From Octopus bimaculoides (Eukaryota), in NCBI RefSeq assembly GCF_001194135.2, contig NC_068981.1, forward strand, positions 152,237,555-152,301,554: 64,000 nt of DNA. The letters run 5' to 3'. This document shows positions 261 through 63,567 of this stretch, one piece after another. The position numbers were made by a program, and so were the translations under genes. Position 1 is the stretch's first letter. Every line of letters starts with the position of its first letter. The notes beneath the pieces were generated by a model that was not told the DNA's origin, did no database searches, and saw nothing but the letters and a program-made list of their open reading frames with translations.

Positions 261-268
261 TCAAGTTT
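261..268 (-). CDS. Putative terminal coding exon: (G)AA ACT TGA = E-T-stop
   Basis: Strong acceptor ttattttacttaatttcattccatttccttag|AAACTTGA; lies downstream of the last A exon where a B exon (AAAC...) is expected; in-frame TGA at 263-261. Confidence 0.55.

Positions 269-63567: not shown

Follow-up and report, generated by a model that had tools for sequence, protein, structure and literature searches.

The window analysed here comprises 64,000 nt of the Octopus bimaculoides genome (assembly GCF_001194135.2, contig NC_068981.1, positions 152,237,555 to 152,301,554 of the forward strand; coordinates below count from its first letter). It consists of AT-rich eukaryotic DNA (~32% G+C), rich in microsatellites, and carries on its minus strand an array of 57 micro-exons of 24-30 nt that encode an acidic repeat peptide, one repeat per exon. 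The splice signals of the array are intact, its exons share a single open frame, and the encoded peptide is under purifying selection.

Exon array and reading frame

Exons were located with two scans of the minus strand. The first, for an AG-exon-GT arrangement with an open phase-1 frame and likeness to the decapeptides proposed earlier, yielded 51 exons, each of 30 nt. The second and stricter scan, which required a GT[AG]AG donor and accepted any length that is a multiple of 3, yielded six more: two of 30 nt (56327-56356 and 55686-55715), two of 27 nt (63541-63567 and 5743-5769) and two of 24 nt (56746-56769 and 6473-6496). The total was 57 exons, 53 of which measure 30 nt. Every one of the 57 is symmetric (phase 1-1) and a multiple of 3 in length, with a GT[AG]AG donor and a YAG acceptor (pyrimidine at -3). 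Joined, they amount to 1692 nt, or 563 full codons and a split one (the 564th), with no stop in the phase-1 frame vs. 35 and 69 stops in the other two. An AG-30 nt-GTRAG spacing occurred 54 times on the minus strand vs. 5 times on the plus strand, and spacings of 20 to 40 nt other than 30 occurred 0-13 times per strand.

The array as observed is thus confirmed as real and above chance. The scans recovered the identical set of AG/GT-bounded exons that a first-pass annotation of this DNA had proposed, with the same stop-free joined open reading frame (ORF) of 564 codons and the same six decapeptide types in the same order. That annotation had also put the coding sequence at less than 3% of the span, and the measured coding share of 261-63567 was 2.7%. 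A composition-based rescan of the window gave no further credible exons, and no other coding exon or ORF was found in the 64 kb; all coding sequence seen in the window lies in symmetric micro-exons of ≤36 nt. The exons are listed below in the order of the minus strand, with types A to F and cassettes U1 to U7.

63541-63567, minus strand, exon 1 in the window, 27 nt, F-like diverged, VTEEEYPR
57076-57105, minus strand, exon 2, 30 nt, A/D-like diverged, SVPETEYWI
56746-56769, minus strand, exon 3, 24 nt, diverged, RPYAEQI
56327-56356, minus strand, exon 4, 30 nt, A/D-like diverged, IISETITRG
55686-55715, minus strand, exon 5, 30 nt, B-like diverged, KRSKVEAAH
53438-53467, minus strand, exon 6, C-like, EPSEVRSTV
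53063-53092, minus strand, exon 7, type D
52718-52747, minus strand, exon 8, type E
50953-50982, minus strand, exon 9, type A, U1
50598-50627, minus strand, exon 10, type B, U1
49912-49941, minus strand, exon 11, type F, U1
49462-49491, minus strand, exon 12, type C, U1
49076-49105, minus strand, exon 13, type D, U1
48690-48719, minus strand, exon 14, type E, U1
45830-45859, minus strand, exon 15, type A, U2
45414-45443, minus strand, exon 16, type B, U2
44364-44393, minus strand, exon 17, type F, U2
43933-43962, minus strand, exon 18, type C, U2
43170-43199, minus strand, exon 19, type D, U2
42776-42805, minus strand, exon 20, type E, U2
40195-40224, minus strand, exon 21, type A, U3
38946-38975, minus strand, exon 22, type B, U3
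38312-38341, minus strand, exon 23, type F, U3
37959-37988, minus strand, exon 24, type C, U3
37575-37604, minus strand, exon 25, type D, U3
37203-37232, minus strand, exon 26, type E, U3
35877-35906, minus strand, exon 27, type D, partial D-E cassette
34117-34146, minus strand, exon 28, type E, partial D-E cassette
30106-30135, minus strand, exon 29, type A, U4
29733-29762, minus strand, exon 30, type B, U4
28679-28708, minus strand, exon 31, type F, U4
28267-28296, minus strand, exon 32, type C, U4
27889-27918, minus strand, exon 33, type D, U4
27517-27546, minus strand, exon 34, type E, U4
23916-23945, minus strand, exon 35, type A, U5
23555-23584, minus strand, exon 36, type B, U5
22720-22749 (approximate), minus strand, decayed F pseudo-exon of U5, outside the ORF
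21258-21287, minus strand, exon 37, type C, U5
20840-20869, minus strand, exon 38, type D, U5
20466-20495, minus strand, exon 39, type E, U5
17868-17897, minus strand, exon 40, type A, U6
17324-17353, minus strand, exon 41, type B, U6
16749-16778, minus strand, exon 42, type F, U6
16295-16324, minus strand, exon 43, type C, U6
15928-15957, minus strand, exon 44, type D, U6
15504-15533, minus strand, exon 45, type E, U6
13576-13605, minus strand, exon 46, type A, U7
13183-13212, minus strand, exon 47, type B, U7
12392-12421, minus strand, exon 48, type F, U7
11902-11931, minus strand, exon 49, type C, U7
11540-11569, minus strand, exon 50, type D, U7
11169-11198, minus strand, exon 51, type E, U7
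7487-7516, minus strand, exon 52, type A, last degenerate cassette
7165-7194, minus strand, exon 53, type B, last degenerate cassette
6473-6496, minus strand, exon 54, 24 nt, shortened C, QPSEATV, last degenerate cassette
6084-6113, minus strand, exon 55, type D, last degenerate cassette
5743-5769, minus strand, exon 56, 27 nt, shortened E, KPQIESTV, last degenerate cassette
851-880, minus strand, exon 57, type A
261-268, minus strand, candidate terminal exon, B-derived, coding start

Cassette structure, introns and assembly gaps

The repeat unit of the array is a six-exon cassette, A-B-F-C-D-E, of ~5-6 kb, present in ~7-9 copies with diverged copies at both ends. At the 5' end (minus strand), five diverged exons (63541, 57076, 56746, 56327 and 55686) are followed by a C-D-E group (53438, 53063 and 52718). 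The middle holds the seven cassettes U1-U7, with an extra D-E pair (35877 and 34117) between U3 and U4, and the 3' end consists of a last degenerate cassette (A 7487, B 7165, C 6473, D 6084 and E 5743) followed by an A exon at 851. Exon identity between cassettes was 92-96% for U1-U4 and 84-89% for U5-U7. Cross-matches between exons showed that A, D and F are mutually related, as are B, C and E, indicating that the cassette is a tripled two-exon unit. Introns within cassettes are mostly 290-1200 nt long, and those leading from an E exon to the following A exon measure 1.7-5.2 kb and are largely unique sequence. Hidden exons in these long E-to-A introns, or in a 6.4-kb intron near the 5' end, were considered and rejected, as neither conserved islands nor compositionally fitting AG..GT ORFs were present there.

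The F exon of U5 is absent from the ORF yet present in decayed form at ~22720-22749, and thus does not lie inside the nearby assembly gap at 21433-21442. It retains ~72% identity to F (flanks included), its acceptor has changed from cacag to cattga and its donor from ggtgag to aatgtt, and it contains an in-frame TAA.

Two further sequence features were observed next to the acceptors. A TTAAT(T/C) motif ~9-13 nt before the AG is conserved in all A, D and F exons (for example at 45860-45880, 43200-43222 and 44394-44414 on the minus strand); it fits the YTNAY branch-point consensus, and its distance to the acceptor would be unusually short for a branch point. Type D exons carry a conserved TGC ~19 nt upstream.

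Nine runs of N occur in the window, all of them intronic, including three (35114-35631, 51316-51461 and 60911-61010) that are additional to the six in a program-made list. E-to-A introns contain five of them and the 6.4-kb intron close to the 5' end contains one; a further one (21433-21442) separates exons B and C of U5. The remaining two are both inside the intron from D35877 to E34117, together with a 401-nt island (34713-35113) unlike all else in the window. Because the exon-adjacent sequence of this intron already amounts to a full normal D-to-E intron, the gaps and the island have the appearance of inserted sequence or of a scaffolding artefact, not of a place where exons were lost. Between E37203 and D35877, the intron starts with ~1.1 kb from the beginning of an E-to-A intron and ends with the last ~175 nt of a C-to-D intron; A-B-F-C were either truly deleted here or lost in a collapsed assembly. 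The irregular partial cassette as a whole spans 34147-37202, and its cause may be a genuine rearrangement or faulty scaffolding.

The nine gaps, the odd partial D-E cassette and the unrelated island between two gaps are what an array made or inflated by repeat misassembly in a gapped short-read scaffold could have left behind. We consider this origin scarcely credible. The cassettes differ by 4-16% in their exons and by far more in their introns, and the E-to-A introns are mostly unique, which indicates distinct genomic copies; an artefact could change the copy number of the array, not its existence. Since every exon is symmetric, the reading frame is independent of continuity across the gaps, which could affect just the number and order of cassettes.

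Selection on the exons

Copies of each exon type were aligned with 150 nt of flanking sequence, and substitutions were counted at aligned sites only. Mean pairwise identity of paralogous exons was 86-96%. In the flanks, it was 63-95% over the last 20 nt of the upstream intron and 75-100% over the first 6 nt of the donor, and it dropped to 30-60% within 50-150 nt and to about 20-60% farther out. Intronic conservation covers the polypyrimidine/branch region and the first 6-20 nt on the donor side. Substitutions per aligned site amounted to 0.11 in exons vs. 0.37 in introns, for which the Jukes-Cantor distance was 0.50. Differences at codon positions 1, 2 and 3 were 0.093, 0.030 and 0.214, respectively (3>1>2), and the Nei-Gojobori method gave a dN of 0.063, a dS of 0.335 and a dN/dS of 0.19 for paralogous exons. 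Equal divergence of exons and introns had been named by the first-pass annotation as an outcome that would speak against a gene; the exons diverged about three times more slowly.

The U5 F copy, which lacks splice sites, served as an internal control: once released from splicing, it decayed and gained a stop. Taken together, the selection data are strong evidence that the predicted frame is spliced and translated, and they speak against a dead repeat, a transposon or a non-coding element. A transposon or satellite origin of the conserved islands was rejected in particular, as conservation is limited to the 30-nt frames and the splice signals and follows codon-position periodicity. The same data bear on the possibility that the array is a dead or never-expressed relic, in which tandem duplication of a former exon cassette came to resemble a gene. 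Such a relic would agree with the degenerate array edges, the one pseudo-exon and the lack of a homologous protein in the databases searched (see below). At a dS of 0.34, however, all 57 exons retain both splice sites and an open frame, substitutions keep the coding pattern described above, and the lone copy without splice sites has visibly decayed. We therefore regard a relic as highly improbable.

Type E exons stood apart from the others, with six of nine copies identical at the nucleotide level and a dS of 0.07 vs. 0.27-0.59 in the other types. A conserved intronic block of ~80 nt (gtgagtttaatt…aatttcactggcttttt.tgtttggcttcagtgttcatgtatgg) follows each E exon on its 3' side (minus strand), for example after 48690-48719 and 42776-42805. 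The E exon is the donor to the long E-to-A introns, and the block could act in splicing as an intronic element or stem from local gene conversion. RNA folding around the conserved E exon gave no stable structure (z-scores -1.3 to +1.0).

Gene ends

The first exon in the window enters in phase 1, indicating that the gene extends upstream past position 64000; nothing further of it was found in 63567-64000. At the other end, a B-derived sequence at 268 has retained a strong acceptor (…ttccatttccttag) and lost its donor. Read as a candidate terminal exon, it gives G|AA ACT TGA, or ...ET-stop. The stop that the first-pass annotation had placed at 261 is real (TGA at 263-261, exon start at 268). An acceptor kept without a donor fits a terminal exon, and a role as the 3' end is plausible from the sequence. 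No poly(A) signal of the AATAAA type was found in 1-260, before a (TATG/TA)n microsatellite that reaches the window edge, which leaves the terminal role and a putative 3' UTR unsupported within the window.

Predicted peptide

The spliced 563-aa peptide is composed mainly of E (23%), T (16%), V (16%) and S (11%), which sum to 66%, followed by R (7%), I (7%), P (5%; 4.8%) and K (4%). Cys, Leu, Met and Asn are absent, and Gly accounts for 0.4%. Ser and Thr together make up 27%, with regularly placed Pro; per 100 residues the peptide carries a net charge of about -14, and its pI is 4.33. Mean hydropathy (0.41) lies below the charge-hydropathy (Uversky) boundary of 0.465, and the peptide is accordingly predicted to be disordered. 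The decapeptide consensus, E-x-x-[ST]-[EQ]-x-[ED]-[ST]-x-[VIT] or more simply E-x-x-[ST]-E-x-E-[ST]-x-V, has conserved S/T at positions 4 and 8 and E/D at positions 7 and 1, i.e., at +3. This is a CK2-type context with ~100 potential phosphosites, which could add charge regulation.

Such a composition could also belong to a secreted or extracellular acidic product of the same real gene, either mucin-like and O-glycosylated or a phosphorylated matrix or biomineral protein, in which the repeats would serve as a polyanion that is hydrated or binds ions, and not as an intracellular spring. Mollusc matrices commonly contain acidic proteins of repetitive, low-complexity sequence, and elastin and other extracellular modular proteins typically have symmetric phase 1-1 exons. 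The Ser and Thr content with regular Pro, the negative charge and the low pI (4.3) all suit a product of this kind, and the array apparently ends the protein, which fits a secreted repeat protein better than a titin-like one. On the other hand, no signal peptide is visible in the window, the 5' end of the gene lying outside it, and the S/T context is S/T-x-x-E (CK2-like), not the S-x-E of the secretory-pathway kinase. The peptide further lacks Cys, Asn and any known domain (Pfam). We consider a secreted product unlikely, while still a serious candidate.

Homology searches

Comparison of the 563-aa peptide with 5.8 billion proteins returned 2329 word-sharing candidates, none of which matched at E≤0.001. 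The HMMER composition correction could hide weak low-complexity matches, although models with at least three such repeats should score. No Pfam family exceeded its curated cut-off; DUF481 (17.5 bits vs. a cut-off of 21.1) and Intimin_C, also sub-threshold, were chance matches. Sequence searches of the PDB with the peptide and of Rfam gave no match. Metagenome contigs scanned for the spliced D|E junction and the genomic E exon gave 0 matches each, as expected for a non-microbial gene. Two ORFs of the window, looked up by exact sequence, returned no record.

The protein database contains at least some O. bimaculoides proteins, yet nothing like the repeat protein, which would be consistent with the gene being unannotated in that database, depending on how much cephalopod annotation it covers. 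The earlier expectation that annotation would probably miss the gene agrees with the 0 repeat-containing proteins among the 5.8 billion and with the precedent of PEVK exons (PMC6469411). Literature searches, which were not exhaustive, found nothing relevant on micro-exon arrays or PEVK in cephalopods or molluscs and no papers on micro-exon arrays anywhere outside flatworms. The locus is a selectively maintained coding array of a kind absent from the protein and literature resources searched.

Other elements in the window

A degenerate LINE-type retroelement with several frameshifts occupies 57400-60300 on the plus strand, antisense within the 6.4-kb intron. Within it, a reverse-transcriptase fragment (…YVDDLKLY…) and a C-terminal ORF (59561-59863) can be recognised. 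The ORF has its best named match, with 80% identity and E=1.7e-29, in an uncharacterised protein of Octopus bimaculoides. This match, the one clue to the organism within the sequence, makes a cephalopod and more precisely an octopod origin plausible, in agreement with the first-pass annotation. Five (AAT)n arrays occur within 4 kb (58230-58294, 59961-60025, 60571-60624, 61253-61305 and 61846-61887). At least two of them are followed by near-identical sequence, with ORFs of the form IIII…MFYTD[TS][RK]PK at 60437-60781 and 61850-62230, which suggests multiple copies of a short repeat element carrying an (AAT)n tract.

Comparison with known exon architectures

The products of the micro-exon genes (MEGs) of schistosomes are small and non-repetitive, whereas the octopus exons encode a tandem repeat of >560 residues, in a mollusc and with essentially one exon size. 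Very small symmetric exons make up most of the coding sequence of MEGs, and a signal peptide is always present, the products being secreted or membrane-anchored (PMC4350168). MEGs also evolve fast, the dN/dS of the mature region being high, and are apparently confined to platyhelminths (PMC4350168). The likeness lies in the coding by very small symmetric exons (57 of 57 here, 24-30 nt), which permits in-frame skipping. The dN/dS of 0.19 differs from the high values in MEGs, a contrast that is indicative only, since the octopus value compares paralogues, not orthologues. Sequence membership in MEG families was not found, nor was a protein homologue of any kind.

The first-pass annotation had described the locus as a MEG-like modular repeat gene. 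The modular part of that description holds, as the segment is genuinely built from one decapeptide per symmetric micro-exon; kinship with schistosome MEGs does not, the architecture being all that is common. As a mechanism, a MEG-type system would rely on differential skipping of micro-exons to yield many protein variants where the animal meets other organisms. What speaks for such a system is that symmetric micro-exons of ≤36 nt contain all coding sequence in the window, as is characteristic of MEG architecture (PMC4350168). Against it stand the fast evolution, signal peptides and platyhelminth restriction of MEGs (PMC4350168), set beside a dN/dS of 0.19 in an octopod host. Moreover, the exons are near-identical repeats, so that skipping would alter length far more than sequence. 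A MEG-type system is thus very unlikely here.

The PEVK region of titin offers a closer parallel. Its >100 short repetitive exons undergo alternative splicing and are often overlooked by annotators and gene finders (PMC6469411), and 93% of the alternatively spliced I-band exons of titin are symmetric (PMC12580133). The PEVK region of insect projectin is alternatively spliced as well (PMC3835035). With titin PEVK, and with projectin and sallimus, the octopus array shares a long run of short, repetitive, symmetric exons with one repeat each (PMC6469411, PMC12580133, PMC3835035). Duplicated multi-exon super-repeats, a Glu/Val-rich low-complexity composition with predicted disorder, difficult annotation and the possibility of in-frame skipping are further likenesses to titin PEVK. 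The differences concern composition and sequence, and perhaps context. P, E, V and K sum to 48% of the octopus peptide (51% with Ala), compared to a PEVK_Finder threshold of 0.54 and ~70% in titin, and the peptide has no sequence match to PEVK/PPAK repeats (Pfam curated cut-offs; solved structures). No Ig or Fn3 exons flank the array within the window, and a candidate stop follows it. PEVK repeats are ~28 residues long, in contrast to octopus exons of 30 nt. By analogy, titin PEVK appears to be a better functional counterpart than the MEGs, an analogy that does not amount to membership in the PEVK class.

One repeat per exon is also found in tropoelastin, with its phase 1-1 cassette exons, and in fibrillar collagens, with their 54-bp exons. 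Like these genes, the octopus array has exons of 3n length in one phase, growth through tandem duplication of exons and far more intron than exon sequence. It differs in its low Gly (0.4%) and Pro (4.8%) contents, in having neither GXY nor an alternation of hydrophobic and cross-link segments, and in its much shorter exons. Neuronal microexons under SRRM4/eMIC control occur singly, at lengths of 3-27 nt, within otherwise normal genes (PMC8797185). The octopus exons fall in a similar size class and likewise have strong donors and short conserved upstream intronic elements; in contrast, they make up the whole coding sequence and, except for type D, have no consistent UGC near the acceptor. The array is best classed as an extreme variant of the one-repeat-per-exon design, not as a relative of MEGs.

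Interpretation

We consider it probable that the window holds the 3' portion of a real minus-strand gene whose product, a long and very acidic repeat of low complexity with one decapeptide per exon, would serve as a length-adjustable disordered spacer or entropic spring. The array may have grown in steps. A two-exon unit, consisting of an 'IVTE..R'-type exon and then a '..SE.ESTV'-type exon, would have given rise to the six-exon cassette A-B-F-C-D-E, which would then have been tandemly duplicated ~7-9 times through unequal recombination, with degeneration of the array edges. As all exons are phase 1-1 and 3n in length, any subset of them joins in frame. In-frame subsets could make the array a length-adjustable module within a disordered, negatively charged spacer or spring, following the design logic of titin PEVK, and the two CK2-type Ser/Thr residues per decapeptide could add regulation of charge.

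Several points weigh against a spacer or spring. No homologue able to name the gene was found among the 5.8 billion proteins, in Pfam or in the PDB. What the window shows does not fit a titin-like context, as no Ig or Fn3 exon was found in it and the candidate stop directly follows the array, and the P+E+V+K share (48%) lies under the PEVK range. Beta-branched residues are frequent in the repeat, which might adopt a regular structure instead of a random coil. Exon skipping would be a possibility permitted by the architecture only, and any signal peptide or domains, and with them clues to the cellular location, would lie upstream of the window. What we infer from the sequence comprises the function, whether spacer or spring or a secreted polyanionic matrix or mucin-like role, as well as expression, alternative splicing and both gene ends.

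In a broader and more tentative reading, which we hold to be possible but doubtful, cephalopods independently evolved a gene made up entirely of decapeptide micro-exons (at least 57, possibly with many more upstream). Combinatorial splicing would adjust how long and how charged a disordered acidic spring or spacer is, in muscle, say, or in some other extensible tissue, and standard annotation would have missed the gene. If true, no one-repeat-per-exon architecture outside flatworm MEGs would be more extreme. Splice-signal periodicity combined with selection tests on paralogues can recover such genes from raw sequence, as here, where the protein database searched gave no match. If transcribed as predicted, the octopus gene would represent an unusually pure case of a protein built through exon-level tandem duplication, with 30-nt exons, one repeat in each, a single splice phase and a six-exon super-repeat. 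It would likewise provide a natural system for spliceosome recognition of dozens of consecutive exons below the usual exon-definition size, and a candidate length-tunable disordered protein in animals with unusual muscle and tissue mechanics.
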